Shown here: piece by piece, positions 1-53,126 of the stretch
Layout of the letters: each line of letters begins with the position of its first letter
Position numbering within the stretch: the first letter of the stretch is position 1
DNA from: Monocercomonoides exilis PA203
Lineage: Eukaryota; Protista; Preaxostyla
Assembly (NCBI GenBank): GCA_001643675.2
Contig: LSRY02000037.1
Location: 868,001 to 932,000 of the forward strand
Length of the DNA stretch: 64,000 nucleotides
Direction: 5' to 3'
The notes under the pieces: generated by a model
Told to the model about the DNA's origin: nothing
The model's database searches: none
The model's input: only the letters and a program-made list of their open reading frames with translations
Position numbers and translations under genes: made by a program

Positions 1-275
1 ATGAAAAATCAAAGAACAACAGAAAAAGCGCCGAAATCATTTCTAACCTTCAAAATTTTTCATTGATATGTTATCTGAAAATCCACTTTCAGTTGATTCA
101 TAATATCTTTGTTGTTATAATATAAACTCAGATAAATCATATTTTATTGAATAAGTGAGACCAACGAAATTAATTGCTTCAATGATTTTTAGAATTTGAA
201 TTTGTAACACTGTTCTTTTTTCCAATAGGAATACTAACGAATGATGTTAATTACCCTTCCATCAATAAAAATATA

Positions 276-1241
276 GGGTCAGAAATTTATCAGTACCAAA
301 AAAATTAATCGGGACCTAAATTTTCTGGCTCTCCAGAGCACTTTTTGAAAAAAATAAATAATAGAAAACTTTCAAAATATTATTATATACTATTCCTGAA
401 AATATATTTTATTTTTTCAATTTGAGTGAAAAGATCTGGTGTTTTTTGTTTTATTTTTCAGATCAAAGACTTGCTCGTATTTTCACGAGCTTTTTGTTTT
501 GAGATTTTTAAGTATTGTTATTGTTAATAAACTCAACTTCTTTATAATTTGGGTTATTTTTTGTTATTAAACACTTCGTTTTTTTATCATTTTATCCATT
601 TCACTAAATTTCGACAAATTGAAGAATACATTTGAATAAATTAGTTTTTTCGTTAATTCAAAAGGGAAAATATGAAAACTATCAATTAACAAAGGTATTC
701 AAAAGGATGAAAATCTTTAATTTTTTATGATCGTGATTTTTTTACAAAAAAACATGTTTTTATGTATTTTTGCATTTTTTGCTTCAAATCACATTCTTTC
801 ATTTCAAAATCTTTGTCACGCACATAACAATCATTTTTTCAACTTTTCTCTAACACGAAAATCCATGACAATTTCAAACTCTACTATTGTTTCTAATTTT
901 GTCAAAAAATCATGAAATGGAAAAAATGATAAAAAAACGAAGTGTTTAACAATGAAAAATAACCAAAAGCATTAATAAGTTCAGATAATTTACAATGATA
1001 TAGCTCAAAACACTTAAAACAAAAAGCTCGTGAAAATATGAGCAAGTCTTTGATCAGAAAAATAAAACAAAAAATTCCAGATCTTTTCACAAAAATTAAA
1101 AAAAATAAAAAATATTTTCTGGAATAGTATATAAAAGTTTAAAAAAGGTTTCCTATTATTTATTTTTTACTGAAAGTGCTCCTGTGAGCCAGAAAATTTA
1201 GGTCCCGATAAAAAAAAGTGGATATGATAAATTACTAACCC
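276..1241. mobile_element. Foldback / large MITE, family A, copy 1 (~330-bp imperfect inverted arms, ~300-bp spacer, no coding capacity)
   Basis: Begins TA|GGGTCAGAAATTTATC..ATCGGGACCTAAATTTTCTGGCTC and ends GAGCCAGAAAATTTAGGTCCCGAT..GATAAATTACTAACCC|TA. Arms ~276-605 and ~911-1241 are reverse complements. Near-identical second copy at 20434-21400. Confidence 0.9.
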
Positions 1242-3399
1242 TATAAATATGAATAATTAATTGTTTGAATCAGACTGTTTTTGAAATAAAAAAAGAAAAA
1301 CGATTCGAAAAATGAAATGAAATAATTGTGAATACTTGATGTTTTATTATTTGATGAAGTCAAATAACACTCCTGCAACAAAGACGTTGTCTAATTTATC
1401 AACTTTTTCTTTATGAACTTTTCATTAAATTGGTTGTTATTGTTTCACTGCGAAATATTTTTTAATCCTTTCCTTCATTAATTTTTTCGATCTGCATTTT
1501 TCAATAACTTCGCATTTTTCATAATTGATAATACTGTGTTGAATTCATTCAAATTATTATGAAACTGACACTTCTTTTTTAAAAAAAGCAACACTTCAAT
1601 AAAAATCTAAAATATAACTCAAAAACAATGAAGTTGGCAAAAATATCTGAAAAATATTTCGAAAAGCAAAATTAATCAAATAATTCCAAGTTGAAATCTT
1701 CCAAACTCATTTTCTTTATTCACACACATTTATAAAGCACTAATCACATTTTTTCATTGAACTTGATTGAGCAAGCTCTGATTTTCTTTTCCGTAATTTT
1801 TGTCGAATATCCATTATTTTCAAGATTCGCACATATTCGTTCTATAACCAAAAAATAAAAACAATTGTAATAATAATTAAAACAAACGTATTCACATTGC
1901 GATTATGAATGATATTTTGACAACATTTCTTTCTTTCTTTCAGAATGAATACTCGATAAAAAACAATTTCATTCTTAAATATTATGTTTCTCACGTTAAA
2001 TATTATTTATCTCCTGTATATTTTCAGCGAAAACAAGTTGCAAACGAAAGATATACCTTATCATTGAAACAACAAGAACGTTTCATCAAACATTTGCAAA
2101 CACATCATATTATATAATAACACACACTCGCAAGCATCAACTCGTCTTGAAATAATTCGTTAAGCTACGATAAATGTCTTTTTTCGTCTGTTTTGAAAGG
2201 CATTTAAAGAATAAATAAATCTGAAATATTTATTAAGGTTTTGCTCCCTTAAATTTTTATTTTTTCTGAGATTTTTGTAATTTATTTATCTCTCCTTTTT
2301 CGTTAAATAAATACATTTTTTATTGAAATAGAATTACAAATAAACTTCTGTTTTCCATTTAAAAGTTTTCCATTCCAAAGTCGCTGAAATCATTTCTTAC
2401 CATCTGAAACTCTCCAATTTCATGCTCAGATAATTATGATAAAACCTAATTCTTTGAAATTTCCAATTCTGAATCTGAAATAGCATGTTCCATTCCAGTC
2501 CTTTTTGCTTTTTGCCCATCATTTTCAGCTTTTTTTCATAGAACCAAGATGATTTTGGAATCAATTGCGCTTTCGAAGCTTCTCCACATGCAATTGGAAT
2601 TTCTATCTTTGCATAATAAAGTTTTTGCGTTCTTGATTTAATTTTTCCATAACAAGATTTTGTAATAACTTTTTGCATTAAGCAAATGTCAGTTTGAGTA
2701 TATTCCTAAATCCGTAATGGAACTGATCAAAACACTAAAAATTTCTTTTTGATAAATAACAAAGTGAAATCAAGAAAGATCAATTAAAAAAATTATTTCT
2801 TTTTTTTATTAATCACAGTGTGCTTTTGTTTCGTCAAAAGTTTCTTTGATATTTCTCAAATATCATGAAATTAAATATTTCTTTTCATTTGAAAAATTAT
2901 ATCAATACAAGATAATGGAGCGTATAAAATTTTGTTTATCCTTCGAGAATTTTAAATTTAAAATGTCTTGCGTTTATTGAAAGTGAGAATGAGCATTGCC
3001 TTAAATGGTTATAAACATCTGAATAGCGAATGGTTCCGGATTTCGCGAAAAGTCCCTGTTTTGGCACCAATGGAATGAAACAAACAGCGTATCACAACCA
3101 AATGATGTTTTTAAATTTGACTGTATTTGTTTCATTTGCAATTCAGTTAAAGATTATGTCTTTGCGTTTATAAAGTTTTAGAATAATCTTCTTCTTTTTA
3201 TTCCTGTGTTTTAAAAAAATATTTGTTGTATTTGTTCCATAATAAACAATTTAACACACATTTTTTTTGGTTCAAGCTTTTCAAAATAGAAATATCAAAC
3301 AAACATATTGTTGAATGTTAAAACGAAAGTGTGTGTATTTTCGAAATCAATAGAATACCTTTGTAACCTGACAAATCACTCAAACAATCGTATATCATA

Positions 3400-5630
3400 A
3401 AAAAACCAATAAGAACAACATCTTGCATTTTTTCCTACAATATGATGATTTCACATATTTTGATTTTGATGAAAAGGGCGGTTTTATCTCCGTTCTTTTT
3501 TTCATCGTGACTTTAACAGTTAATAATTTATTATTTCCACCTGCTTTTCATATTCTTTTTTACAGTTTTCAGCATGAAAGAAAATTTCTGTTTTCGGAAA
3601 TTCAGAGAAAATTTCTGCACAAAATCTCTCAATATGTGGAGATGAGGAGAGGGTGGAGGTTTGCTTCTTCATCTCTGATTAGTGCCATCCCCGAGGAGAT
3701 TAGGTTATAGAAACGGGGCTGACTAAGTTAGAATTTGATCGAAAAAATTTTTTAAAAAAATAAAAAAATGATCAAAACCAAAAAATTTTTTAAAATGAGT
3801 GTTATCAAAAACAAAACAGAACAAGGATTGATAAACATTAGAAATCAAATGATGTCATTTGGTTATTGGCAAATAGAAAATCGTTTGGAACGAATTGCAA
3901 CAATAGTTTCAGATGGAAAGGCAAGGATAGTGGATGCAGCCAATCTGCATGAATTCAGCCATTTTGTCATTAACAGAGCAATTGCAGCTTTGGAAAACAA
4001 AAGAAAAGTCTGCAAAATAGTTCACCCAGAGCTATTAACAGATAAAGAATAAAAACAGTGAAGGATGTCATTCGCTGCGAAAGTTCAAGTGGAGTGAGCA
4101 TTTCTGTTACTCAAATAAAACATTTGGTTTTCTTTTTCATTTGTAAACAAACATCAATTTATTGTTATCTTATTTTAGATGGAATCTGTAATTTCTGATA
4201 GACAAAAAACTATTTAAAGAAGAAAAAGAAAAAATTGAAAATTCGAAGTCAACGCTCTTCTCATTCATTAAAAGGAATCCACACCTTTAATAGTCTCTTC
4301 CAAGGAACGTTGATATTCAACGATTAGCTGTATCAAATAAACAAACCCTCCAGCCTTTCTACGAACTTCTTCAACATCTTTATAACACTCACAAATATTC
4401 TTCTTCATTGATATTTAATACAGACGAATTTTCACTTCTCCTCTCAGACACCACCAAAAAGCTTGTTGTACATCCTTCAGATTCACCAGCTGGGTTCAAC
4501 AAAACGCCCATGAATATGCCAAACGCCACATTGTGCGTTGCAGCTGCTGCAGACGGTTATTCTTTGAGAAGTTTCGTTTTATGGCCTTCAAAGAAGATTC
4601 CAGCCTAACTGTGTGTGATGCTCAGCTCTTTTATGAATATTTAGGAAGATAATGATGGCAGGATGACCGACGCAATATTCAGAAGATACGCAGAAGATGT
4701 TCTCCTTCCAGTAATCGTGGAAAGACGAACTCTTTTGAACAAAGATGAAGAAAATTGCCTTCTTCTGCTGGACTCTCATCCATCGAGAGCTCAGCTTGAC
4801 ACTCGGCAAAAATTCGCTGATGCCTCCTTCGATGTGGTCACTTTCATCCATCACAGCACACACATCACTCAGCCTCTCAACCGTGGAGTATTTGCAGTTT
4901 TCAAAAAAAAGTTTTAACACAAAATATGTCGTTCCTTCTTTTTCATCTGTCTCTCTTCGAAGAGAAGCATTTGCAGATGATCTTCCCCAGGCTCTGCAAA
5001 CAGCATTATTGCCTGAAACAATTGTTTCTTCGTTTGTCAAAAGCGGAGTGTTGTCAAATAAATGGCACGCTGTTCTTTCCACGTTGCCTGATGAGCCTTC
5101 TGTCACCCTTAAGAAAAAGAACCACAGATTTGTTTTTCATGGGAAAGTATTATTTCCTACTAAAAATTTTTGGATGAATGGAGAAATCATATTAAAATGA
5201 TAGAAGAGAAGATCAGGAATGATGATAATGAAAAAATTTGAGGGAAAAAAAAAATTTGCGGATGAAAAACCAAAGAAAAGGGAAATAACACTTAAACAAT
5301 TATTTGAGATGATAACTCTGGAGATGAAAGAAAACAAGAAAATTCCAGAAAAATAATCAAGAGAGAGTTGATTGATTATATTTATTTCTTGTGAACTTTT
5401 TTTTTGAAACAAACATGCTTTCATGAAAAATAAATTTTTTTTTATTTTTTCATTCACAAATAAAAAACCATCCAGATAAAAAAACCACTCAATTCACATT
5501 CTTGATGAAATTGGAAATTAACTTTCTTTCGTTTCCTTTTCATTTTTCTTTTTTTTTCTTCATTTGTTGCATTTGTTTGTTTTGAAAAAAAAGACATTTT
5601 CAAAAAACAACTCAACAATCACTTAAGAAT
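3400..5630 (+). mobile_element. Decayed pogo-like (IS630-Tc1-mariner related) DNA transposon, copy 1
   Basis: Whole segment is homologous to the inverted copy at ~49270-51530 and carries a transposase relic. Exact termini/TIRs could not be defined. Confidence 0.75.
3768..5380 (+). pseudogene. pogo/Fot1-like DDE transposase (HTH-psq + CENP-B-type HTH + DDE_1), frameshifted and with stops, probably one short intron
   Basis: Motifs in order: IVDAANLHEFSH..HPELLTDKE (psq-HTH/linker), FIKRNPHL, IFNTDE (first D), TLCVAAAADGYSL..VLWP, GRMTDAIF, LLLLDSHPSR, HHSTHITQPLNRGVFAVFK. 35 residues between the second and third catalytic positions; the third D is N in this copy. Confidence 0.85.
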
Positions 5631-9168: not shown

Positions 9169-10134
9169 ATTTTGGAAGAAATAAATGATGAAAGAAAAAA
9201 ATGAAGAAAAACGAGGAAAAAAGGCTAAACAGGAAGTTTGACGACAAGCTCAAATGAAACTGCACTTTTGTTGAAACAAGAACTAAGAAGAATAGAAGAA
9301 AAGACGCTGTGCTGTTGAAATACATCAATGAGATCTTTTTTTAAGATATTTCATTTTCAAATTTCTTTTTTGGAAGAATTCCTGCAAAAAAAATATTTGA
9401 AATTGAAATGAATATCGTTTATTGTGATTTTTTCCCAATTGTTCATCAAAAAATACAGAGTAAGAAAGTTTTGTTTGAATATTTTTAATTAATCCCTTAA
9501 AAACATTTTTCATAAGTCTTTTCAACAAATTTTAATAAAAAAATATCAGCGCACTTTTCGATAAAATGTTTTGAAAAACTTCATATATATTCATTAAATA
9601 TTTTTTCACAGAAAAAATTTGTCTCCCTGAGTAATTGCAAAATTCCCCAAAAATTTCAAAATTTCCATAGACAATTTCAAAATAATTGGGTTATTTTGAA
9701 ATAACCCAATAATTTTAAAATTTTTTTTAATTTCACAATTCATCTAATGAAATGTTGAAAATAGAAAAAAAAAAAAAGAAAAGAAAAAAGGTTTTTGAGT
9801 TTTAAACACAATTCATTTCATTTTCTCAAACATTCACAAAATAATCTGCAACATTCAACGATAATAAACTATCATAATGACATCGAAAAAATTCTAAAGT
9901 TTCATGAAAGCTGGTGACGACATCTTCGAACCCTTCTTCTTCCATCCTTTCAAGCGCCTTCTTTTCTGTTGTCTTTCTTTCTTTTTCGTCGAATTCACAA
10001 TTCTCATTTTCTTTCAATTTTCTGGAAATCGTAATAAAGAATTCCAAGAAATAAAATATCATTTCGTCAGCCATTGTTGATTTTGGAATCACCTCCAAAA
10101 AGACTTCGATTCCTCGACATTTAATCAGGTCATC

Positions 10135-12794
10135 GGCATAAGTGTAAAAAATACCTCCCCAATTTCATGATTTCTTTCATGATAATAAGTGACAGTAAAT
10201 AACATAAAAAAACAACACTTTTGGGTGGAGCAGTTTTTTGAGATATCAACATAAAATATCAAGAACAAATATTTGTGATCTGTCCCATAATTAAATTTTT
10301 TATTCAAACTTTTTTGCTTAAAACTTTAATGCCTGCAAATTGAAAGTTTATCTTTGGATTTGATAACACAGCACTTAAATGCTTTTCAATTGAGGTTTGA
10401 AATTTACACTTTATTGTTATTTTTAAGTGCAATGCTTAAAAATTTTTTATAACCTTCTTAATAAGGAACATCCACATATTCATTCAATTTATTTTCGAAA
10501 ATATTAATATTTTTAAGCTTTCGAAGTTGTTATTAACGTATGGAATTAATCTTTCGTTTTTTTAAAGTGAAAAACTTGTTTATCTGGAATTTATTTTTCA
10601 TTAATAAGAAAGATTATTAGTGAAATGAAGATAATCATTTATGTTCAATTTGATTAAATTTTTACATATATTTTGATAATTTGATATTTAGCTCATTTCA
10701 TTCGTATGTGATTATCTTTTTCAGTGATAAATAATTTCGGAATTTTAATAAGAAAGTGAAGTGAAGATGATTTTTTTAATGTTGCATAAAGTTTAAATGT
10801 TGAAAAGGAAAAACCTTTGATTATACGAATATATTTCATGTTCACAAACAGAAAAAAATGATGCAACTTTTTTTTTGATGTTAATAAAATAGTTTACTTT
10901 TAAAAACCTCAAGTGAACATCTAAAAATAAGAAATTTTCAACACCTATTGACACTTTTCCAAAAATGAAAACAGTTATACAAACCACAACATAAACTATA
11001 TCATTTCGTCTATCTTTTTCATATTTTCATCTTTTCTGATAGTATTCTTTTGATTTCCTTTCTTTTGCTTCAACTTTTTTGTCTCCAGATCAATCTCTTT
11101 TTCTAATAGAACAGGTCATATTATATAATTAGACTATCTTTGATTTATGAAATGTGGAGAAAATAAACATGAAGCGAACTTGAATATGCTTGTCTGAATG
11201 AAATAGCTATTCAGAAGAGACAGTGCTGAAAGTGCGAGTTAGAAAGAAGGATCAAGTTGTCAATGAGGCATTACGAATGCTCTGTCGATTTCATTGTTTC
11301 GAGGAAGTTCTTCAGTGACGAGGCAAGCGTGGACAAGTCTTGAAGAATAGTGAAAGTGTAAGATTCAGAAAAGGACACTCCCATTGTTTCCTCAACTTGC
11401 AAAGTCGGAACTTCATAAGGAGCTTCTGAAATGAACTTGAAAGAGTTAGAAGTGTGGGAAAGACTTCTTTTTGATGTTGAAGTCAATGACTTTCAGGCAC
11501 ATGGCTTCGTTTCGCAAGCAGAACCTGTGCGAATGATGAATTTCGCTCTGAAGGAATGGTCTTCGATGGAGATGACAGATTCAGTACTCAGGGGAGTGAG
11601 TATTGGAGGAGGGGAATGAAGCCAGTGAGGGCATACTCGATGGTGGCACATGGGTTTTGCTGTGTTTTGCTGCAGGCATCTTCATCAGTTCCACTGCTGG
11701 CAACGGTTTTGTTCTGGTTGATGATTGGAAGGCAGCCATTGAACTCAGCATTATCAGCTTGTCCATTGTTCCATTCTCTTTGTGTCGGGGTTGTTGATCC
11801 GCATTGTTGGAAAGGAGATTGTGTGATATCACTTCCGAAAAAGAACACATCGTTTCCTCTTCCATTTGTTGCAGTATTTCCATCGAAGAAACAGAAAGTG
11901 ATGAATTTAACTCCATTCATCCAGGAATAAGGAGGATAAAAGTAAATGGCAGCGCCTCCGTATGTGGAAGAGGCAGTCAGATTGTCATTGATGAACTGGC
12001 ATTCAACATTGAAATCTGACTTGGTTTGTTGCTTGGAGGATTATTGAATGTTAGAAAGCTAGCAGAATCACCACCAGAATTTGCGCTACAGATGCAATTT
12101 TTGAACAAGAATTTTGCATCAGATGGCATGTTATCGAGAGCAAAATACCAACCAGTTCCAATTGTACTTGTGATTTTACAACTTTCAACTCTGTTTTCTG
12201 AAAATGAATAAGCAGAATTGGATTGTGGATAAGCAATGCAATTTGCTCCTCCATGTAAAGCCGAACAACTTGAAAAATTTGATATTGGAATGTTAGCATT
12301 TTTCAAAAATTTCCAGATCATGAATGTTTTTCCTTTGTCATTAAGAAATCAGTGACAATTTTTGATTTTTTGCAGTATGAAATAGAATATTGCTCTCTCA
12401 TGATTTGATTGCAAGTAAAAATACCATGATTGATCTTTGAAGGGAATGTATTTAATACACAGATGTTCCTGCGAAAATTGAAATTTCTGAAAATACAACA
12501 TGAAAAATAATAAAGATTGTTCAATTTCAAACCTCAATTGAAAAGCATTTAAGTGCTGTGTTATCAAATCCAAAGATAAACTTTCAATTTGCAGGCATTA
12601 AAGTTTTAAGCAAAAAAGTTTGAATAAAAAATTTAATTATGGGACAGATCACAAATATTTGTTCTTGATATTTTATGTTGATATCTCAAAAAACTGCTCC
12701 ACCCAAAAGTGTTGTTTTTTTATGTTATTTACTGTCACTTATTATCATGAAAGAAATCATGAAATTGGAGGAGGTATTTTTTTACACTTATGCC
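10135..12794. mobile_element. Non-autonomous Pack-type DNA transposon: ~270-bp near-perfect TIRs (10135-10404 / 12523-12794), GG..CC termini, 8-bp TSD AGGTCATC, captured host gene fragment inside
   Basis: aggtcatc|GGCATAAGTGTAAAAAA ... TTTTTTACACTTATGCC|aggtcatc. The near-identical ORF-track peptides MNKKFNYGTDHK.. on opposite strands are the two TIRs. No transposase motif inside. Confidence 0.93.
11190..12520 (-). pseudogene. Captured, decayed fragment of the Cys/Gly-rich receptor ectodomain family
   Basis: FSSCSALHGGA.., FCFFDGNTATNGRGNDVFF..GSTT..LP..VASSGTDEDACSKTQQNPCATIEYAL parallels FCLFENNT..AADIY..LST..YLP..ISNSGRNVDTCGRTGSECQTVEYGV in the 2646-aa ORF. Confidence 0.8.
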
Positions 12795-14129
12795 AGGTCA
12801 TCAACTTTCACAACTCTATTTCTCATTGCTACCCTTAGTGAATGCACGCACTGTTGGCTAATTTCAATGCGAAAGTCCTTTGATGCAGCAAACACCTGAA
12901 CGATGCTGCTTAAAAAATCAAAAAATTCTCCATTCCACAATTTGCACTTGAAAAAATAATAGTCCATCGCTTCAATCTATCTCAATAAAACAAGTTCTTC
13001 TTTCGTTTCTTCTCTATTCTTTTAATTATCCCTTCTTTTCTCTTCCAATTCACACACTTTGACAATTCTTCCAATTCTCTTCTTGCCTCTCTTGCAAAAT
13101 GAAGTTCTTCCACGAAAATTTTTTCTAAAGAAAGATCTCTGTAAAATCCGCGAATAAAAAATGCCCAAGCAGACTGATAGGCAAGCTGAGTGAGGTTGTG
13201 ATGCTCCTGATGATATTCGATGATCTCTTTGATTTCGTTCAGATAAAGAACTCTTGAAACGTTCTATTCAAAAACAAGAAAAAATTTCAATAATTTCTAA
13301 AATACCACGGAAATGTTCAAACATAATATGTGTCAATGCAACTCAGCGCCAAAAGAGCCATTTCAACCTCTTTTTGTGTTTCCTCATTTTCTTCTTTCTT
13401 CAACGCAACTTTCAAAAGACAAGGCACAAGAATAGAATTCAATTCCAATGATGATGAGCACCCAAAATACAAATTGCATTCACCAAGATCAGCAATCAGC
13501 TTTTCATCCTTTCCCTCCTTTTTCCCATCTTCTTCAGCAATCATCTTCTCAAATCTCACTTTCAACAAAGTAAATGCATAGCCATAAGCCCTAATATTTT
13601 TCAAGATTTTATAATATCCAACGTGTTTCAGAAAGAATAATGCATTTTTCAATGACAATTTCTTTTCTTTAACCATTTTGTCCATTCTGTTGAACAGTAT
13701 TTCTGTGAATGTGGAATTAAGTTCTTTTTCACTCATTTCATCAAATGTTTCAATCGTTTTTTCAATTTTCTGTTTTTGTTCTTCCTCGTTGCAATCTTCA
13801 AGCTCAGATATCAATTCTTCAAAGAAAAAAAAGATAGAAAATAATGCATTAGATAAGAATTCTAATTCAACAACGAGCACAAACCATTGAACCTTTCAAT
13901 TCCACTCGTTGTCTGCATTTTTGAAAGCACATTGCGAACAGAAAACAATGAAAAAACGTCATTTGCATTGAATTCAAATATCATTGGATAGAAGAAATCG
14001 GTGCAAAATATAAACTCAAAGCAACCATGAAAGCATAAGTTGTTATACCATTCTGCGTTGTTAGTGTTTTTTTGACAAGGCGTTACAAAAAAAAGAAAGA
14101 AAAACAACGTTTTTAATCAATTTTTATAA

Positions 14130-22328: not shown

Positions 22329-25300
22329 TCAGCCATCGCCATATTGATATATTTCCTCCAGCAGTTTTATTATCTCATTCAAAGAAGGCCTGTCTCTTGG
22401 TTCATCTGCCCACATCTTCTCCATCAGCTCAACCAGATCTTCTCCTTCGATTCCTTCTGTCAGCGGTCGCACTCCATCTCTCATCATCTCTTGTGCTTCC
22501 TCCGCATCACACTCGCTCAATGGCACTTCTCCTGTTGTCATTTCATGCAGAATCAGTCCAAGTGTAAAAACAACTGTTTTTTCCATTTCCTCATCTTCAT
22601 TTCCTTCTTCTGGTGCCTTCCATCGCTTCATTTCTTCCTTCTGCTTTTCATCTTTCAATTCCTCTGTTAAAACAAATATTTCATTTTCGTTCCCTTCCTC
22701 AACAAAGATCGAATATGGGCATAGCTGCCTTGCTATCATTCCCACCCTTTCATCATCAACCGAAATCAAATGCTCAAGCAGTACTGCAACTGCCATAACC
22801 ACTTCCTTCCCATCAATAACATCCATCGCTCTTGTTCCCAATGTGAAATTACCCTGAACTGAATGAATCACTGAGTGCAATGTTTTGATGTTATTTTTCT
22901 CTTTCTCTCGAAATGGCTTCTTCGCTAGTATCACATTGAGTGAATGAGATTGAGGTACCAATGAAACAGAAGCATTCTCGGATAACTGTATTGGAGATTC
23001 CAAATCTGGCAGATCATTTTCATTTAGAATGTCATCGGTTATTAATGGAGGCTCTGGAAGATCTTCTTCATCGTTTTCAATCAACAGAGGTATTTGACTC
23101 GTCATCCCTTCCAGCAATGTGGATGGCATGTCGCTCATCTCAATGCTTCCTCTATTGTTTTCATTTCTTTTCTCAACTTTTCCTATTGTTTGTTCATTTT
23201 CTAACCTCTCTTTTTCAACCCTCTTTTTTGTCTCCGTCAATTTTTTTCGTAGAAGAACAACAACCACAACAAATAAAACAATGAAAAATATAAGGATAAT
23301 TGAAAGAATTATCACAATGATCAGCAAAAATGATTTTTGTTCTTTTCCTCCTTCAACAATTCTTTCATATTCATTTGTTTTGGATTCACTCCTGTTCTTC
23401 AGCACAAATGAATCAGTGACCGATGGAGAATCAGCTTTTCCAAAATTTATGCACACCCTTACTTCTGCTTCACTTGGAACGCCTTCAACTGTCCTGACAG
23501 GAACAGACCCATGTATCTCTTTCTCTGATATGAAACCGCTTGCATCAAACAAATACTTCTCAACCACCTCCTCATCCCCAATCGCTGCAACTGTTTTGAA
23601 TGAGAGGTTGCACGGAAGGAGAACCGACCCTCTGAACACGATATCCACCTTCTCCCCTGACTTTTCAGATGTCACACTCTCCACCCTCGGGATGAAAAAC
23701 GCGGATGCCCTTTCTCTGGCAATCCCTTCCAGTGTGCACCCTTCATCCAATATCCACAACGATGCATTGTCCTTCACTCCATCTCCTCCTTTCAAGCTCA
23801 CAACCTTCAATCTTCCTGAGTCTCCACACAGAATGTTTCTTCGTGCCGACCCATAATTCACTATCGACGGGTTGTTGTTCATGAATTCTCCTTTCTCAAT
23901 CTCCACACTTCCTCCTGTTAATGAAAGTCCTCCATTTTCTGAATTCGTAAGCGTTGAATCCTTCATCAGTCCAGAACAATTATGAAGATCGATCATGGAA
24001 CCATTCCACCTACACAGATTTTCAAATGAATCTTCGTTTATTCCAAAATGCTGCACACCCGCTGCTCCATCAAAAGCACATGAAGACAAGTTAACATCTG
24101 TTAAGTCTGTCAGAGCTGCAATTCTCCCCTTTTCTGAGGATGAGATGCATTTTTGGCTGGTGCAGTTCTCCAACTCCACCAGCAAAGACGAAGATGAAGA
24201 AGATGAAGAAGAAGCAAAACAGCACGGACCAAGCGAATTTCTGGTAATGTTTTGATACGATGACTGCTTCAGCCGGAATGTCGAAGCGTTTGACGCCACA
24301 CTCACTGCACATCCTTCTCCAAGCATCGCGCTGCAAATGGCCAAGAAATTCATCTCAACATTTGCATCTTCGCATTCAGCAGAAACCAATGATTCCTTTG
24401 AAACGCGTGTATCGTCAAGTTCCACGTGGCTGCACTGGATGTATGAATGGCCTCCTGAACCGTCTGAGCAAAACACAATCAAGCTTGCTTTGCTCTCTGC
24501 ATTCTTGACTTGAACCTTCTGCAGATGAGAGTCTTTGCAGTTGTGAAGGACAAGGACGGATTGTTCAAGTGTGCAACTGGAAATGAGCACCTGCTGCATT
24601 GAGAGGTCTGCCAGATTGCGGAAGTCCAACAACACACCAGAATTCACATCAGAAATGTTCAAGTCCACTAATGAGAAATACAGACCTGTGCTTGATTCCA
24701 CGCATGAAGAGCCGAGACGAAGACAATCAAAAGTGCATCCGTCAATCGATAACCTGCCATTCTCCACGAGAATGATGGAGCAGTTCAATTTGTATTCAGA
24801 GTTTTCACTCGAATCTACTTGACTAAATGCTGTATTTGAAATAGACAAGTTGCCATCAGTCAGCGATAACAAGCTGGAATGAGAAGAAGAAAACGCGCTT
24901 CCGAACATGAACTTCAAAAATTCGATTTTCACTCTCGATGAGCACGAAAAGAGATTGCTCCTCTTGCTTCCGATGCTGCTGTTCAGCACAATATTCCCTC
25001 TTTCCCCTTCTGCAGACAGCGACTTGATCCAAACATCGCAAGCGCTTGCTTCCCCTGACACCACAGCGCTTTTGCCAATCAGCAAATTGCTGAAAACTGA
25101 AGGAATGATGTGGTGCAGCGCAACATTCAGCGAAATGCACGGTTCGCTCATTGTACCACACTGGCGCGTGTCAGAGGCATTGTCAGCCGAAGAAGATGCA
25201 AATATCGTTTCGCTCTGATACACAACCACAAGCAGCAACAGATCTTGCTCGTCTGCATAGTCAGGAGCTGTGCATCCCCACATGGCAAGCTCCCGAACAA

Positions 25301-28300
25301 ACGGAGGTCTGAAGTCGAGCTGGAACAGCTCCGCCCCGATTTGAGCTTCAACATTCGCGCATTTCACATACACGTCTCTTCCCCTAAAAGCTTTGTTTTC
25401 CATGAACGTCGTGTTTTCCAACAGGAAAGGAAGCAGCCCATCGCTTGCAATTGATGAGCAATCCAGGAACATCGCACCTCCTCTGCCAGTCGCTGAGCAG
25501 AAGCATCCAGAGATCGAACAAAAGTTGCAGTGGAACAACGAGCCTTCGCTCAATTTCATGGCAATGCATCCGCCATTCTCACTCAGGCTGCTTCCGCTGC
25601 TCTTGATCGACGTGTTTCGGACAAGCACGCGGGAAGGCTCGCTTCCACAGCAGCTGATGATCGACGGCTCAGAAGGAGCACTTTGGCGAAGCGAGAAAAG
25701 CGTGCAGCATTTCAGCTCAACCGTTGGACTGTCGCCTTCATTCAATATCTGTGGCTCGCCTCGCAATTTGCCCTGCGCCAGCTCTGCCACAATGCTTTTG
25801 CCCATCAGTTCCATGTTGCTCATCGAGACATTCGTCAAGTCAATGCTGCTCTCATGCGATGCCATCAGAATGTGATTTTTGCACTTGATGGATTGGAACG
25901 AGCAGAATGACATTTCGCATGTTCCAGTCAGGCAGGCAACAACACAATAAGGAATGGCTGCCTCAGAAGAGCTGGTGAAGGAGCAGCTTTGAGCTGCAAA
26001 AGCGCTGCCAGCTGTGCTTATCAGCTTCGTCTGCTTCCATTCAGATCCATCCCCGAAGCAGATCTCAATGTTAATGAGAGTGCATGTGCCGGTGTTTGCC
26101 AGCACAGAATCGCGTTCTTCTTCCTTTCCTGCCTGAGGTGAAATGGCTGCTCCAAAAGTCAGGGCAGGACGAGACTTGGCGTCAACTGAAGTCACAGTGA
26201 CGTTTGAAAAGTCGACCTCGCTGTTCACCCGTGCTTCATCGATAACGAGGAAAATGCTCATGTTTGGCTGCTCTGGCTCATCCAACGCACGAAAGTGCTT
26301 CTGCCCATACTCCATTGTTGCGCATGGCTCTTCTGCACTCCCACACCGCAGAACATCCCACCCGCTGTTCTTGCTGAGATGGATTTCTTGAGAAGCATAT
26401 CCAATCAGAAATCGGCAAAGATCGAAGTTTGTCTTCGTGCTGTCGTTTCCCACAAACAGATTTTTATCTCCCGCTGTCTCGCTGACTTCAAATGCCAATG
26501 TCTGTTTTGTGATGGAAGCATTCAGGTCTGACGAGAGAAAGAACATGTTTTTCCCGTGTTTTGCAGAGCACTGATCGAAAGCCATCTGCTGGAAGGAGAA
26601 TGCATTGGAAGCCGAGCAGTCGAAATAGACCCCTCCTCCTTTCCCACCTGTTTCACACTCTGCGCAGCATTTCGTGAATGTGGCATTTTCCATCGTAAAT
26701 TGTCCTTGAGCCTCAACAACAACTTTCATTGCGCCTCCCTCTATGCTCTCAGCGCCTTTGGCATTCGTGACATTCCAGTGCAAGCACTCAACATGGCTTG
26801 AAATTGAGGATGCAATTAACACAGCCCTGTTTGCATCGCCGTTGGTGATCCCTTCAAAAGAGCATTGCGAAAGAGAGATAACCTCGTCACTCGTCGCACC
26901 ATCATTCAATAGTTTGGATGTTGACGATGGAATCACACAGATGAGAGGTTGATCGCCAATGTCTGCGTTTTTCACTTTCAGCGAGATAACTGTCGGAGCA
27001 GCAGCACCATTCTCGCTCACTGCAATAGGTGCCTGGCAGAGGCAGCCTGAATCAATCTGGCAGTCGTTGATATTGAGTGTCCCTCCGCAGATCTGAAACA
27101 GCCAGTAACTTATTTGGTTCAGCTCTCCCACCTGCATTTCGAGCGCGCATTTTGCCAGCGACAGGTTGCTCTCAGAATTCAAGGATATTAACGTTTCTAT
27201 CTCAGCATCTAACGAAGAAGGAAGCAAAAAGTGGATCAATTCGACGGACACATCCCCTGTTGAAGCCATCACTTTTCTTGTTGAGGCCTGCAGCGACTTG
27301 ATGCAAGTGATTTCTGCTTTTGAAGTATTTGATGATTTCAAATCCAAATTGTGCAACATCATTTCGTTTTCAATTGTTGCTGAGGCAAGAACAGCTACTG
27401 TCTTTGCGTTTTCTTCATCCAACCTCTCCACACAGTAATTGAGCGAGTGGCACGGATAATCCGAGAATCCACACACAACAGTATCAGCTCCATCCTCGCT
27501 TCCCACATGGACTGTGCTCCCAACTTCCTCCAGAAACAGAATCAACGGAATCGCGTGCTCGTGATCATTTCCATGGAACCCACATAAATCATCAAAGGAG
27601 CTATGCCCAAGTGCATAAACAAAAGGAAGCGTCTCGTTCGTGATCGATTCCTTCAGGTCTGGAGATTGAACAAATAAATCGTTTCCATGCTTCGCTTTAT
27701 TCGGCTTTTCTGATGAAAAAGAAGGTGTCTCGATTGTTAATGAAGCATCTGAATGCCCAAGTTCCAGAAAGATTCCTCCTCCATATCCCTCCTGCGAATC
27801 GAAAGGCGCCTCGCATTCTTCGAACGAACATGAAGAAATTGTTGTTGAGAATGTATTTGGCAGTGAGAGGAACAGCGCCCCGCCTCCATTTCCATCTCCA
27901 GAAACAACACAATGCTCAAAAGTGCATCCACTTATTGAAGCATCGCAGCCATCCTCAAATCCTTCGCTCCGCACTGCATTCAGGCATCCGCCATTCTGCT
28001 CGCTCTCAATATCCCAAAAAGAAGTATTGGAAAGAGAGACAGATTTGCAATCCGACAAAGCAATTGCACAGCCTTGCGAAAATGAAAACCCAGAGACATT
28101 CACAAATTCCATCGTCAATGAACCTTCATCAACACGAATCAGGGATTTTGTTAAGGGCTGAGTCGATTGGGTACTTTTCGTGAAACTGCACAGCTCCAAC
28201 TGAACTGAGCCTGAGGAGCCGACCGCAATTGCAGATCGATTGAACACGCAAACAAAGGAAATCCTCTTTGCATTCAGCGAACCATTGCCGATCGAGATTA

Positions 28301-30242
28301 AGCAGCCATTTGACGAGGCTTCGTGACACTTTATTACCGATGAGTTGCTCTCTGTTCCGACAAAAACGATATTTCTCCAGTCAATGTCAATCATGTCTTC
28401 TTTGAATTCTTCACTTGATATCAAAACATTCTGCCCCAAATATGAATTCCATCTTGTCACTCCATATTCCACTGTTTGACATTCTGATCCTGTTCTTCCA
28501 CAAGTGTCCACATTTCTACCAGAATTACTGATATGTATTTCTGGCTGAGGAGCTGGCAGATATGAGTCATATGCCACACCTTTATCTCCGCATTTCTCTG
28601 CAAATACACTGCATTGCACAACTTTTCTTGGAGCTGTTGAAAGTGTAAAACTTCGCAATATCTGAACTGTGTTGTCTGTCAAGCTAAATCCCTTTCCTAT
28701 ATAAATATCTGCTGCATGTGTCGATTTCTGCACTGTATTGTTTTCAAACAAGCAAAATTGGATTTTGACGTTCTTATTGTTATCATTATCGGAAACATCA
28801 AATCCTCCTGCACCACGTTTGGAATTTCCATTTAATAAGAAACAATTTGATATCACAAAATCGACTTTATGAAACTGTAGATATACCGTTCCAGCAAAAC
28901 ATTTAAATGCTTTACTGCATTTGAATACAGTGTTGTAAATTGATCCGCTTCCTCCAATAAACCATGCAACGCTTCCCCCATAAGCTGCTGAAGAATTTTC
29001 AAAAGAACAGCCAATAACAATAGAAAATTTATTTGTAATATGAGTAAATGCTCCTCCGATAGGAAAATTTCCCGTTCCTCTGCAACAATTAAACAATGAA
29101 TTTTCAATGCTGCAGTCACTTCCATTGCTAAAAATTGCTCCCCCATAGCCATAATAACCATCAAATGTATCGGTGCATTCGGAAAATGTGCATTTGTCAA
29201 CAGTGAGCTTGGCACTTTCGCTTACTGCAATTGCACCACCATGAACAGCGCTGCATTCGGTGAAGTTGCAATCTTCGAATTTGATTTCTCCTTCTGAAAA
29301 CGATTGTGCTTCATTTGTGAAGTTCTGATGGGAAATGGTGTTTTTCGAACGAATGAAAGAAGTGTTTGATGAGCCAAAACCACATCCACGAGAGCCAGAA
29401 ATGAGAACTCCATAAAATGGACAAACGCAATCAGCGACCATGCAGCCTTCCATTTTGCTTTCCTGTAAAGAATGCTTTTGTGGAAAGTTTTTGTTGTTGC
29501 TCTGAACAGAAATGTTGCGGAAGCTGCAAAAAGAAGCTGAGGCAAATGACAAATCGACATCTCCAATGAACGGATTCGCAATTGAGGCACAAAACGAAGA
29601 AAAGGTGCAACACAAAACATGAACACTGCCTGTCAAAGGTTGTGCGCAGGAGCTTGCTGAGACAAGAGATGGCCATGCCTGCTTCGGAAAAGTTCTTTGG
29701 AATGAAATATTCGTCATTCTTATCGTTCCTCCAGCACAGTCAAAAGGAGATAAATCCGTCTCTGTCACCACATTTATGATACAATCGCTTACAGATAATG
29801 TGGATAATTCATTTCTCACAGAAATGGAAGATGTGCATCTTTGGTCAATTTTTATTTGCTCAACTGCCAATGATGCGTTCAGAACCTTCATCCTACTGCA
29901 AATCCAGCTCCACTCATTCTTGCTATCATTAAGTGCGAAAGCAACAGAGTCATGATCAAACCCCCTCTCTGTATCCACCAGCAATCGTTTTGAGCTTTTT
30001 TCTGTATTTGTCAACCAGCCAGATGAATCAAACTCCTGCAGCTCATTAGACTTCACCACAGTGATTGCATTCACTCTGTGCAAAAAGAGTGCATTTTTAC
30101 TTGCCTCATAAGTTTCTCCTAACATTCCAATGCTATAATCTTGAAAATCAGCTTTTTTGAATGCATCTGCTTTCAAACTAGTATCTCCTGTGCATAGCAA
30201 AGCAGAAATAATTATGGAGACACTTATACTCGCCAAAAGCAT
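22329..30242 (-). CDS. Giant single-pass receptor-like protein (~2637 aa): signal peptide, beta-helix/polymorphic-membrane-protein-like GGA[I/L] repeats with CGx4PC modules, TM helix, cytoplasmic kinase-like C-lobe (pseudokinase)
   Basis: Intronless ORF; first ATG at 30242 gives hydrophobic MLLASISVSIIISALLC. Repeats HGGAI, YGGAI, GGGAL, YGGGI, GRGGAM and CGFSDYPC, CGSAEEPC, CGTMSEPC. TM LLIIVIILSIILIFFIVLFVVVVVLL followed by RKK. Tail KRWKAPE..VFTLGLILHEMTTGEVP..WADEPRDRPS. Confidence 0.92.
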   Translation of the reverse strand: MLLASISVSIIISALLCTGDTSLKADAFKKADFQDYSIGMLGETYEASKNALFLHRVNAITVVKSNELQEFDSSGWLTNTEKSSKRLLVDTERGFDHDSVAFALNDSKNEWSWICSRMKVLNASLAVEQIKIDQRCTSSISVRNELSTLSVSDCIINVVTETDLSPFDCAGGTIRMTNISFQRTFPKQAWPSLVSASSCAQPLTGSVHVLCCTFSSFCASIANPFIGDVDLSFASASFCSFRNISVQSNNKNFPQKHSLQESKMEGCMVADCVCPFYGVLISGSRGCGFGSSNTSFIRSKNTISHQNFTNEAQSFSEGEIKFEDCNFTECSAVHGGAIAVSESAKLTVDKCTFSECTDTFDGYYGYGGAIFSNGSDCSIENSLFNCCRGTGNFPIGGAFTHITNKFSIVIGCSFENSSAAYGGSVAWFIGGSGSIYNTVFKCSKAFKCFAGTVYLQFHKVDFVISNCFLLNGNSKRGAGGFDVSDNDNNKNVKIQFCLFENNTVQKSTHAADIYIGKGFSLTDNTVQILRSFTLSTAPRKVVQCSVFAEKCGDKGVAYDSYLPAPQPEIHISNSGRNVDTCGRTGSECQTVEYGVTRWNSYLGQNVLISSEEFKEDMIDIDWRNIVFVGTESNSSVIKCHEASSNGCLISIGNGSLNAKRISFVCVFNRSAIAVGSSGSVQLELCSFTKSTQSTQPLTKSLIRVDEGSLTMEFVNVSGFSFSQGCAIALSDCKSVSLSNTSFWDIESEQNGGCLNAVRSEGFEDGCDASISGCTFEHCVVSGDGNGGGALFLSLPNTFSTTISSCSFEECEAPFDSQEGYGGGIFLELGHSDASLTIETPSFSSEKPNKAKHGNDLFVQSPDLKESITNETLPFVYALGHSSFDDLCGFHGNDHEHAIPLILFLEEVGSTVHVGSEDGADTVVCGFSDYPCHSLNYCVERLDEENAKTVAVLASATIENEMMLHNLDLKSSNTSKAEITCIKSLQASTRKVMASTGDVSVELIHFLLPSSLDAEIETLISLNSESNLSLAKCALEMQVGELNQISYWLFQICGGTLNINDCQIDSGCLCQAPIAVSENGAAAPTVISLKVKNADIGDQPLICVIPSSTSKLLNDGATSDEVISLSQCSFEGITNGDANRAVLIASSISSHVECLHWNVTNAKGAESIEGGAMKVVVEAQGQFTMENATFTKCCAECETGGKGGGVYFDCSASNAFSFQQMAFDQCSAKHGKNMFFLSSDLNASITKQTLAFEVSETAGDKNLFVGNDSTKTNFDLCRFLIGYASQEIHLSKNSGWDVLRCGSAEEPCATMEYGQKHFRALDEPEQPNMSIFLVIDEARVNSEVDFSNVTVTSVDAKSRPALTFGAAISPQAGKEEERDSVLANTGTCTLINIEICFGDGSEWKQTKLISTAGSAFAAQSCSFTSSSEAAIPYCVVACLTGTCEMSFCSFQSIKCKNHILMASHESSIDLTNVSMSNMELMGKSIVAELAQGKLRGEPQILNEGDSPTVELKCCTLFSLRQSAPSEPSIISCCGSEPSRVLVRNTSIKSSGSSLSENGGCIAMKLSEGSLFHCNFCSISGCFCSATGRGGAMFLDCSSIASDGLLPFLLENTTFMENKAFRGRDVYVKCANVEAQIGAELFQLDFRPPFVRELAMWGCTAPDYADEQDLLLLVVVYQSETIFASSSADNASDTRQCGTMSEPCISLNVALHHIIPSVFSNLLIGKSAVVSGEASACDVWIKSLSAEGERGNIVLNSSIGSKRSNLFSCSSRVKIEFLKFMFGSAFSSSHSSLLSLTDGNLSISNTAFSQVDSSENSEYKLNCSIILVENGRLSIDGCTFDCLRLGSSCVESSTGLYFSLVDLNISDVNSGVLLDFRNLADLSMQQVLISSCTLEQSVLVLHNCKDSHLQKVQVKNAESKASLIVFCSDGSGGHSYIQCSHVELDDTRVSKESLVSAECEDANVEMNFLAICSAMLGEGCAVSVASNASTFRLKQSSYQNITRNSLGPCCFASSSSSSSSSLLVELENCTSQKCISSSEKGRIAALTDLTDVNLSSCAFDGAAGVQHFGINEDSFENLCRWNGSMIDLHNCSGLMKDSTLTNSENGGLSLTGGSVEIEKGEFMNNNPSIVNYGSARRNILCGDSGRLKVVSLKGGDGVKDNASLWILDEGCTLEGIARERASAFFIPRVESVTSEKSGEKVDIVFRGSVLLPCNLSFKTVAAIGDEEVVEKYLFDASGFISEKEIHGSVPVRTVEGVPSEAEVRVCINFGKADSPSVTDSFVLKNRSESKTNEYERIVEGGKEQKSFLLIIVIILSIILIFFIVLFVVVVVLLRKKLTETKKRVEKERLENEQTIGKVEKRNENNRGSIEMSDMPSTLLEGMTSQIPLLIENDEEDLPEPPLITDDILNENDLPDLESPIQLSENASVSLVPQSHSLNVILAKKPFREKEKNNIKTLHSVIHSVQGNFTLGTRAMDVIDGKEVVMAVAVLLEHLISVDDERVGMIARQLCPYSIFVEEGNENEIFVLTEELKDEKQKEEMKRWKAPEEGNEDEEMEKTVVFTLGLILHEMTTGEVPLSECDAEEAQEMMRDGVRPLTEGIEGEDLVELMEKMWADEPRDRPSLNEIIKLLEEIYQYGDG

Positions 30243-30883
30243 TGGTCTTGCTCTTCCTCCGAAACACAAAACAGTATTGATATTTCAGTTAAAATTTATT
30301 ATGAGAATTGATCAATATAATCTGATGTGTGTTATTTTTTCTCGCAGAAAAACAGAGTTGTTTCGTTTTTTAATTCAAAACTATGTGTATATATGTTTGT
30401 TTATTTTATTTTATTTTATTTTATTTTATTTTATTTTTTTCACTTCTTTCATAAAATTCAATCCCACTTCAACCACTTAATGAAATTCCTCATCCCGTTC
30501 AAAGCAGTTCAACAAAAACTCCCAAGCAGATTTGCAAGGAAGAAGAGTCAGGCTGTGATGCGGTTGACGTTGATCGATGATATTTTTGATCTTGTGAAAA
30601 TGCAATGCTTTATCAACACACAATTTAAAAGGGAATAATATTTATTTTTTCAGTTTATCGATAAAAAAAGAAAGAAAGAAAAATTATCGAACTTTGAAAT
30701 GACTGACACACTTAATGCCATTAATGCCACTTCCACTTCTGTTTTGCTTTTCATTTCTGTTTTTCTCTAAAGAAGCAAAAATTATTCTTTTTTTCGAATG
30801 ATTGGAGTGAATTTATCAATGTCAATGCATATTTTTTGCAAATTCGAAAGAAGAAGAGGCAATTGAAGTAATTGCAATATCAG

Positions 30884-52271: not shown

Positions 52272-53126
52272 ATGTTTAGCACCCCACAAGCTCCATTGCA
52301 AGCCGGACTCGCACCTTCAATTGGTTCTGCTATGCAGATCAGTGGGCCAACGAGTTCCCAATGCAGTAGTTCACAAATGCCAACAGCTTCTTCAAATATC
52401 TTTTCACATGCTGAAGTAGAGCTACAGCCTTCTCCCATCTTATCCGAAGCCACAGATTCTCGAAGTATTGATGATTTGTTCAAATCAATATTTGGTGTCG
52501 AACCAACAACTTCCCTTTTTGATTTACGAATGCCGAAGACGATGTTGGAGGACATTGCAACGTGCTACAACGAACAGGATTTCAGCCCGGTTTTACATGC
52601 ATCTCCTCCAGCATCAAGCAGAACGTCCTTTTGGTATCGGGATGCCTTAGACAGAGCAGGTGAACGAGTAGAGAAATTCTTGTATCCTACATTTAAGGCG
52701 TTGCTAATGGCGCTTCAAGTCAAGAGCGATGAAGCAGAGAGCCACGAACGGATGATAAAGGACGCAATTCTAATGGTTTCCCAAGCACTTCATGAAGCAA
52801 GGAAGTGCAGAATTGAAGGAAGATTCGGTTTTCGCGCAGCAGAAAAGATGGACTCAGAACCATCAGGAGGCCTGTTGACCCAGCGTCAGGCACAGATATT
52901 GGAAGAACTATCAAAAGAGCAGAAGAAGCAACAGGGACCTGCATATATTTTTGCTTCTGCAAAGAGCAGTTCCTTTCAAAAATACAACCCGAGGCCACCA
53001 ACTACCAGAGGAAAACAGTTTTTTCAGGGAAGACCCCGGTCGTCCATGTTTCGAAGCACTGGAGCAAGGAGAGATTATTGGAAGAGAAGCTCCTCGGGAC
53101 GAACCGCGGGACTGCAGAAGAATTAG
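52272..53126 (+). CDS. gag-like ORF1 of DIRS element 2 (284 aa)
   Basis: ATG immediately after the left ITR; helical core and basic C-terminal tail. Assigned by position. Confidence 0.8.
   Translation: MFSTPQAPLQAGLAPSIGSAMQISGPTSSQCSSSQMPTASSNIFSHAEVELQPSPILSEATDSRSIDDLFKSIFGVEPTTSLFDLRMPKTMLEDIATCYNEQDFSPVLHASPPASSRTSFWYRDALDRAGERVEKFLYPTFKALLMALQVKSDEAESHERMIKDAILMVSQALHEARKCRIEGRFGFRAAEKMDSEPSGGLLTQRQAQILEELSKEQKKQQGPAYIFASAKSSSFQKYNPRPPTTRGKQFFQGRPRSSMFRSTGARRDYWKRSSSGRTAGLQKN

Follow-up and report, generated by a model that had tools for sequence, protein, structure and literature searches.

Transposons that carry fragments of host genes have been documented mainly in plants, in the Mutator, CACTA, hAT and Harbinger superfamilies of DNA transposons. 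Plant Mutator-like elements (MULEs) with a ULP1-like protease gene are autonomous transposons bearing a transduplicated host gene, and, in trypanosomes, VSG pseudogenes take part in segmental gene conversion, a donor-cassette form of antigen variation. Pack-MULE and Pack-TYPE elements of plants are transposase-less elements with terminal inverted repeats (TIRs) that hold host gene fragments, the products of diverse independent captures, and occur in several copies (PMC8903248); the Merlin superfamily is mentioned neither there nor in a 2026 gene-capture review. Merlin elements are defined by an IS1595-type DDE domain, a target site duplication (TSD) of 8-9 bp and GG termini, and more than 100 copies from at least 7 families, with 8-bp TSDs, have been described in Monocercomonoides sp. 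PA203 in a text that has no mention of 'non-autonomous', 'MITE', 'second ORF' or 'additional ORF' and contains 'captur' only in a cited title (PMC8101967). Merlin was thus already known in this species, without cargo; the exchange of cargo is new here. We analysed a 64-kb stretch of the Monocercomonoides exilis PA203 genome (contig LSRY02000037.1, positions 868,001 to 932,000, or G000:C33:868001-932000 in our numbering; hereafter, the window) in the context of the 82.3-Mb assembly of 101 contigs. Positions 10135-12794 of the window are a real 2.66-kb non-autonomous Merlin DNA transposon that interrupts a gene, MONOS_14701, and a part of its interior, the cargo, is homologous to the N-terminal module of a family of giant receptor-pseudokinases.

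As in the ULP1-bearing MULEs, coding sequence of host origin is always present both in transposase-encoding elements and in what derives from them, but here this passenger is a surface-receptor ectodomain fragment from a family with hundreds of members and appears to recombine with that pool. The mosaic exchange among many diverged copies of a surface module, broken ones included, resembles that of trypanosome VSG genes by analogy only, as we have no evidence of an expression site, of directionality or of element copies acting as donors. The likeness to Pack-MULE and Pack-TYPE elements lies in a transposase-less TIR element that holds a host gene fragment and is present in several copies; the differences are the Merlin superfamily, the single shared module, the presence of cargo in autonomous elements and its later homology-based exchange (PMC8903248). 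In common with published Merlin elements, the autonomous copies encode an IS1595-type DDE transposase, the TSDs are of 8 bp (once 9 bp) and the TIRs start with GG; unlike them, this family carries a host receptor fragment beside the transposase and retains it in deletion derivatives, and its TIRs are 180-290 bp long, compared to mostly 23-29 bp in the published Monocercomonoides elements (PMC8101967).

A Merlin element in a coding exon

The element begins with GGCATAAGTG at 10135 and ends with CACTTATGCC at 12794 (GG..CC), and the conserved terminal 5'-GG is present on it (GGCATAAG... / ...CTTATGCC). An exact 8-bp TSD lies directly outside both ends (Table 1). An ungapped repeat search paired 10146-10424 with 12503-12781 (279 nt, 95% identity), and a gapped alignment started from the true ends gave TIRs of ~272 bp that are identical at positions ~28-272, the sole differences being a 1-nt change in the length of a poly-A run and a C/T substitution near positions 18-27. 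Receptor-module sequence makes up 0.8 kb of the 2.1-kb interior, and the remainder is element-specific: the 1.1-kb backbone is found elsewhere in the genome at only 11 places, all of them family copies, and has no protein match. A tblastn search with the transposase of the Merlin family described below returned no match in the element or in the whole window. Both junctions of the element are bridged with zero differences by contigs assembled from one sample of the same organism (four DNA runs). No empty-site form was seen among these contigs, none of which joins 10134 to 12803; a joint 9952->13067 was set aside as a trace of an empty site because its 21-nt sides are too weak to count.

Deletion of 10135-12802, that is, of the element and one TSD copy, merges two minus-strand frames into a single 160-aa open frame (...VKVDDL/IKCRGIEV..., with the slash at the joint). 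In the present genome, the MONOS_14701 frame enters the element and meets a stop after two codons, and the annotated gene model (P0033, 182 aa, window 12788-13880, minus strand) ends at the insertion, two codons inside the transposon. The excision joint is crossed by 14 paralogous proteins, the best of which aligns nearly without gaps (184 columns for 183 residues), and for several paralogues (282-327 aa) the alignment continues past it as far as 9829. The family is species-specific and counts at least 65 annotated proteins, none of which has been characterised or has a Pfam domain. Judged by these alignments, MONOS_14701 is truncated, as the fuller members of its family reach ~320 aa. The insertion into its coding exon duplicated 8 bp and cut off ~100 C-terminal codons.

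An earlier note, made from the letters of this stretch alone, had described near-identical TIRs of ~270 bp with GG..CC ends, an exact 8-bp TSD, the lack of a transposase and a host frame restored upon excision. All four readings hold, the TIR length by gapped alignment, the TSD as AGGTCATC on both flanks, the lack of a transposase by the empty tblastn search and the host frame by both its own length and the paralogues that span the joint.

Table 1 Features of the window element and of the exon that it interrupts, in window coordinates
Feature	Position	Strand	Evidence
Downstream part of the interrupted MONOS_14701 exon, 102 codons, severed by the insertion	9829..10134	-	Paralogue alignment through the joint
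Left TSD copy, AGGTCATC	10127..10134	.	Direct reading; identical to 12795-12802
Left TIR, core ~272 bp, begins GGCATAAGTGTAA	10135..10424	+	Repeat search, gapped alignment, terminal 13-mer count
Element-specific non-coding backbone	10425..11554	.	Shared by family copies only; no protein match
Cargo, fragment of the N-terminal, putatively beta-helix-like module of the giant receptor-pseudokinase family	11555..12339	-	tblastn, blastx, nucleotide identity, frame analysis
Short spacer between cargo and right TIR	12340..12502	.	Comparison with copy L046
Right TIR, ends ...CACTTATGCC	12503..12794	-	Direct reading, repeat search, gapped alignment
Right TSD copy, AGGTCATC	12795..12802	.	Direct reading
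Upstream part of the interrupted MONOS_14701 exon	12803..12967	-	Frame reading; P0033 maps here

Autonomous relatives and the affiliation with Merlin

The left TIR of the window element has 41 matches in the genome, mostly in inverted pairs 2.5-6.9 kb apart, and its exact 13-nt terminus occurs 54 times, compared to 2 occurrences of the reversed control. The terminus defines ~20 paired elements, and the family numbers at least 20. Perfect 8-bp TSDs, each of a different sequence, flank 11 copies (the window element and ten others), and one further copy has a 9-bp TSD with one mismatch.

Five copies encode a transposase, and the window element is not among them. One of the five, L046 (C25:233898-240826, 6,929 bp, TSD ATTAAAGC), has TIRs of 182 nt that are 98% identical and the same 13-nt terminus as the window element. 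Its 484-codon open frame is recognised by NF033547 with 98 bits, above the cut-off of 75, and by PF12762 with 7.5e-16, and residues D74, D139 and E177 lie within VEIDE, YSDMW and TIECMW, respectively, the usual DDE motifs. Over residues 1-372 of the L046 frame, the other four show 95-96% identity, and three of them are located between paired termini 6.5-9.7 kb apart. Copies L043-L045 correspond to L046 minus positions ~226-3650, a deletion that takes out the transposase gene.

Considering (i) the IS1595-type DDE domain, (ii) the 8-9-bp TSDs, and (iii) the GG termini, which together define Merlin (PMC8101967), the window element is, on sequence grounds, a member of a Merlin (IS1595-type) cut-and-paste family in M. 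exilis. A Mutator affiliation is ruled out by the IS1595-type partner transposase and by a TSD of 8 bp, not 9-11 bp. The earlier note had named both superfamilies as candidates and had envisaged a wider element family; the first affiliation and the family stand, as the TIR is not confined to this locus and transposase-bearing copies of the Merlin/IS1595 type exist. The 6.5-9.7-kb transposase-encoding relatives with the same termini would move the window element in trans.

The cargo and its parent receptor family

The cargo spans ~0.8 kb and not the 1.3 kb that the earlier note had proposed, and, over 705 bp, it contains one frameshift and no in-frame stop. Its similarity to the receptors is strong: it is 76-79% identical in nucleotide sequence to family members elsewhere in the genome. 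The giant genes of the window itself, from which the earlier note had drawn this homology, are only distant relatives of the cargo, the match to the open reading frame at 22329-30269 being weak (25% identity, E = 2e-6). Sister copy L032 has retained an intact 444-codon cargo frame, which is annotated as MONOS_10244 and whose protein is 67-79% identical to 95 scored loci of 1,724 candidates. Many of these matches lie inside open frames of 2,500-3,100 codons. In representative giant receptors, the module occupies residues 1-475 and part of a kinase domain the C-terminus, only the C-terminal lobe of this domain being present in P0086; this architecture agrees with the 'protein tyrosine kinase' family, which is larger than any other in the genome (PMC8767320). 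The parent family comprises hundreds of loci at 76-83% nucleotide identity.

A Pfam search found no domain in the cargo module, and an AlphaFold2 model built from a 22-sequence alignment was unusable (mean pLDDT 36). A protein-language-model look-up returned DUF1565, Chlam_PMP and Beta_helix clusters with scores of 0.90-0.95, which provides a lead, and a lead only, that the module may be a right-handed beta-helix of the DUF1565 / Pmp type.

All sampled copies share the cargo module at the same position, including distant copies that have only ~165 bp of TIR in common. In five of five transposase copies, the transposase gene is followed by the same ~0.9-kb spacer and then by the cargo, on the same strand; gene and spacer lie on the side of the cargo that matches window 12340..12502. 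The other listed matches to the spacer and cargo query (host paralogues and cargo-only copies) begin at position 843 or later, which is approximately the start of the cargo. As cargo is present in every sampled copy, the transposase-bearing ones included, it was acquired before the family diversified: the fragment of a receptor module entered an ancestor of the whole element family, and the window element is a transposase-less, deletion-type derivative of a cargo-bearing lineage and not the product of its own capture.

Discordance between cargo and backbone

Comparisons of sibling copies separate the cargo from the rest of the element. L036 and L037 are 98% identical in the TIR and 97% in the backbone but 78% in the cargo, and the corresponding values are 96%, 95% and 77% for L031 and L032, and 92%, 92% and 74% for L038 and L039. 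The pattern is reversed in L033 and L035, where the cargo is 88% identical, the TIR 87% and the backbone 75%. Along L036 and L037, identity is 92-100% (mostly 95-100%) in almost every 60-bp interval outside one block at ~510-1060, in which it is ~70%; this block has sharp edges and lies within the receptor-homologous segment (~412-1225). L031 and L032 show the same pattern with a divergent tract at ~478-1850. Maximum-likelihood trees of backbone and cargo conflict: the backbone rejects the grouping of L033 with L035 (approximately unbiased test, p = 6e-8), the cargo rejects that of L038 with L039 (p = 0.011), and the median terminal branch is 0.15 in the cargo tree versus 0.046 in the backbone tree. 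Furthermore, two autonomous copies whose transposase regions are 95-100% identical differ in their TIR variants, are dissimilar in the cargo and have unrelated sequence downstream. This discordance rules out the simple vertical decay of one capture.

The differences between sibling cargos fall on 30-38% of third codon positions versus 15-22% of first and second positions, and a non-coding control is flat. Such a bias implies that selection had acted on the variation in coding paralogues before the elements received it. The cargo segment has clearly been exchanged between copies or with paralogues. After the capture, other versions of the module would have replaced the cargo repeatedly through homologous exchange, via gene conversion or via template switching during the repair of excision gaps, and this would have left siblings with near-identical ends and backbone but with cargo as different as that of unrelated paralogues. 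The number of templates, hundreds genome-wide for the cargo versus about eleven for the backbone, may account for the restriction of the exchange to the cargo. We therefore consider it probable that the window element is a Merlin transposon moved in trans, with an ancestral receptor cargo that was later repeatedly exchanged, and that it inserted into MONOS_14701.

Several points weigh against this interpretation. The trans-mobilisation is one that we infer solely from the shared termini, and the TIRs of the sampled autonomous copies match that of the window element over their outer ~165-190 bp only (78% identity for L046 and 93% for the copy on C48). The exchange is shown among the ten long-TIR copies as a group and not for the window element in particular, whose nearest sibling is only 90% alike in the backbone, and the read support covers the window copy, not the sibling pairs. 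A near-identical source is to be expected for a recent conversion; the best matches from genome-wide searches with the exchanged tracts nevertheless show 79-89% identity, even with 160-bp pieces, and no donor of >89% identity was found for any tract tested. These searches scored the best 40 candidates and skipped very common words, so that a donor could be missed. The donors may have been lost, left unassembled, overwritten since or overlooked by the 40-candidate scoring. In the terms of the earlier note, which had suggested looking for the donor with the cargo, the parent family was recovered but a specific donor was not.

Alternative explanations

The earlier note had interpreted the element as Pack-type, with non-autonomous elements capturing receptor fragments independently and the window copy moving after its cargo had decayed. 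The window element does lack a transposase and does hold a host gene fragment between its TIRs, and the point at which element passes into cargo on the 5' side is not the same in the window element, L031 and L032 as in the other copies, which makes more than one acquisition, or a rearrangement of the junction, possible. The same module nevertheless occupies the same position in all sampled copies, including the five with a transposase, and neither differing captures nor an autonomous partner free of them was found. The tract in which L036 and L037 diverge lies inside their shared cargo and is bordered by shared cargo flanks, which argues for exchange and not for de novo capture. The single frameshift and zero stops of the window cargo, together with a third-position divergence of the kind seen between paralogues, do not look like decay. 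The cargos of the elements are closer to non-element proteins than to one another, a pattern that we did not count as evidence of multiple captures because decaying copies of one capture produce it too. We regard independent capture as very unlikely. The related suggestion that the family may shuffle receptor modules gains partial support from the clear exchange of cargo between copies or with paralogues.

The constancy of the module, in every copy and downstream of the transposase on the same strand, would also suit a functional second transposon gene under selection, for instance one for a secreted or decoy protein, instead of a passive cargo. The preference of between-copy differences for third codon positions, the 444-codon frame retained in L032 and the open frames of 200-260 codons retained in several copies are consistent with such a gene; the bias is, however, equally expected if selected host paralogues supplied the variation, the fragment starts inside the repeat module and has no recognisable start of the parent gene, and in nine of the ten long-TIR copies the 705-bp core contains a stop or a frameshift, with 1-5 in-frame stops in eight of those nine. 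A second gene is, on balance, quite unlikely. The discordance might instead stem from the assembly, which was built from Nanopore reads and polished with short reads in ten Pilon rounds in a genome with 46% repeats (PMC8767320), so that mis-mapped polishing reads would have overwritten the cargo within hundreds of paralogues. This scenario gains from the position of several family loci inside suspiciously perfect palindromes and loses to the clean edges and codon-position structure of the tracts, which random mis-polishing is not expected to create, and to stretches of 122-222 bp of the window cargo that are matched without difference, at single-copy-like depth, by the four-run contigs. An artefact of this kind is extremely improbable. 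A bolder extension of the repeatedly exchanged ancestral cargo is a two-way gene-conversion network between element fragments and giant receptor genes, in which Merlin spreads ectodomain variants and its TIRs seed fold-back amplification of receptors; we deem it unlikely, though worth stating.

Implications

The window element is an ordinary single insertion of an unusual family, a Merlin lineage with an exchangeable fragment of the largest receptor family of its host. It extends the carriage of gene fragments to the Merlin superfamily and to an oxymonad protist and adds two unusual traits, namely that autonomous elements carry the fragment themselves and that other versions of the module appear to keep replacing it. 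No gene family of the genome is larger than the parent family, which overlaps much of the 35% of the genome reported as 'unclassified repeats' (PMC8767320). Mobile, exchangeable N-terminal modules could help to explain how this family has grown and diversified and why so large a share of the genome has resisted repeat classification. The two-way conversion network, if true, would amount to a system by which a transposon diversifies the surface receptors of a protist. The genome annotation is affected too: it counts at least one cargo copy (MONOS_10244) among the genes and gives the transposon-truncated MONOS_14701 as a complete one.

Palindromes, arrays and other loci with the module

L031 (G000:C48:314733-317999) has no TSD, and its two flanks are exact inverted copies of each other (0 mismatches over at least 1,500 bp per side), which places it at the centre of a larger palindrome. 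This palindrome could be a TIR-seeded fold-back duplication, a larger element or an assembly artefact. L040 (G000:C53:495500-499900) is a core that bears cargo but lacks its own termini; it is enclosed by two family termini 11 kb apart (C53:492097 / C53:503248), and the inverted arms around it extend over at least 814 bp and are 99% identical. L041 (G000:C91:1062826-1065338) and L042 (C91:1519982-1522493) are 2.5-kb copies, ~98-99% identical and 457 kb apart, each flanked by inverted arms that hold a fragment of another Merlin transposase (PF12762 at 1.8e-10, L041:3-368). At G000:C47:1081050-1097265, ten direct 13-nt family termini on one strand follow one another with a regular spacing of ~1.8 kb, in what looks like a tandem array made from the element end.

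The module also occurs at ~336-677 of P0020 ('putative nuclease HARBI1', 764 aa), which matches PF13359 at 1.2e-18; this protein is either evidence of another, PIF/Harbinger-type, transposon superfamily carrying the module or a merged gene model. Inverted pairs of modules with equal query scores, separated by a few to tens of kb, are numerous in G000:C25 at ~1.1-2.5 Mb and are present on other contigs, for example C25:2120605(-)/2128139(+), C25:2050483(-)/2065556(+) and C98:4041(-)/8199(+), and many of the module copies in these regions are part of open frames of just 500-800 codons. The window also contains, at 52951-56415 on the plus strand, an open frame of 1,154 codons.

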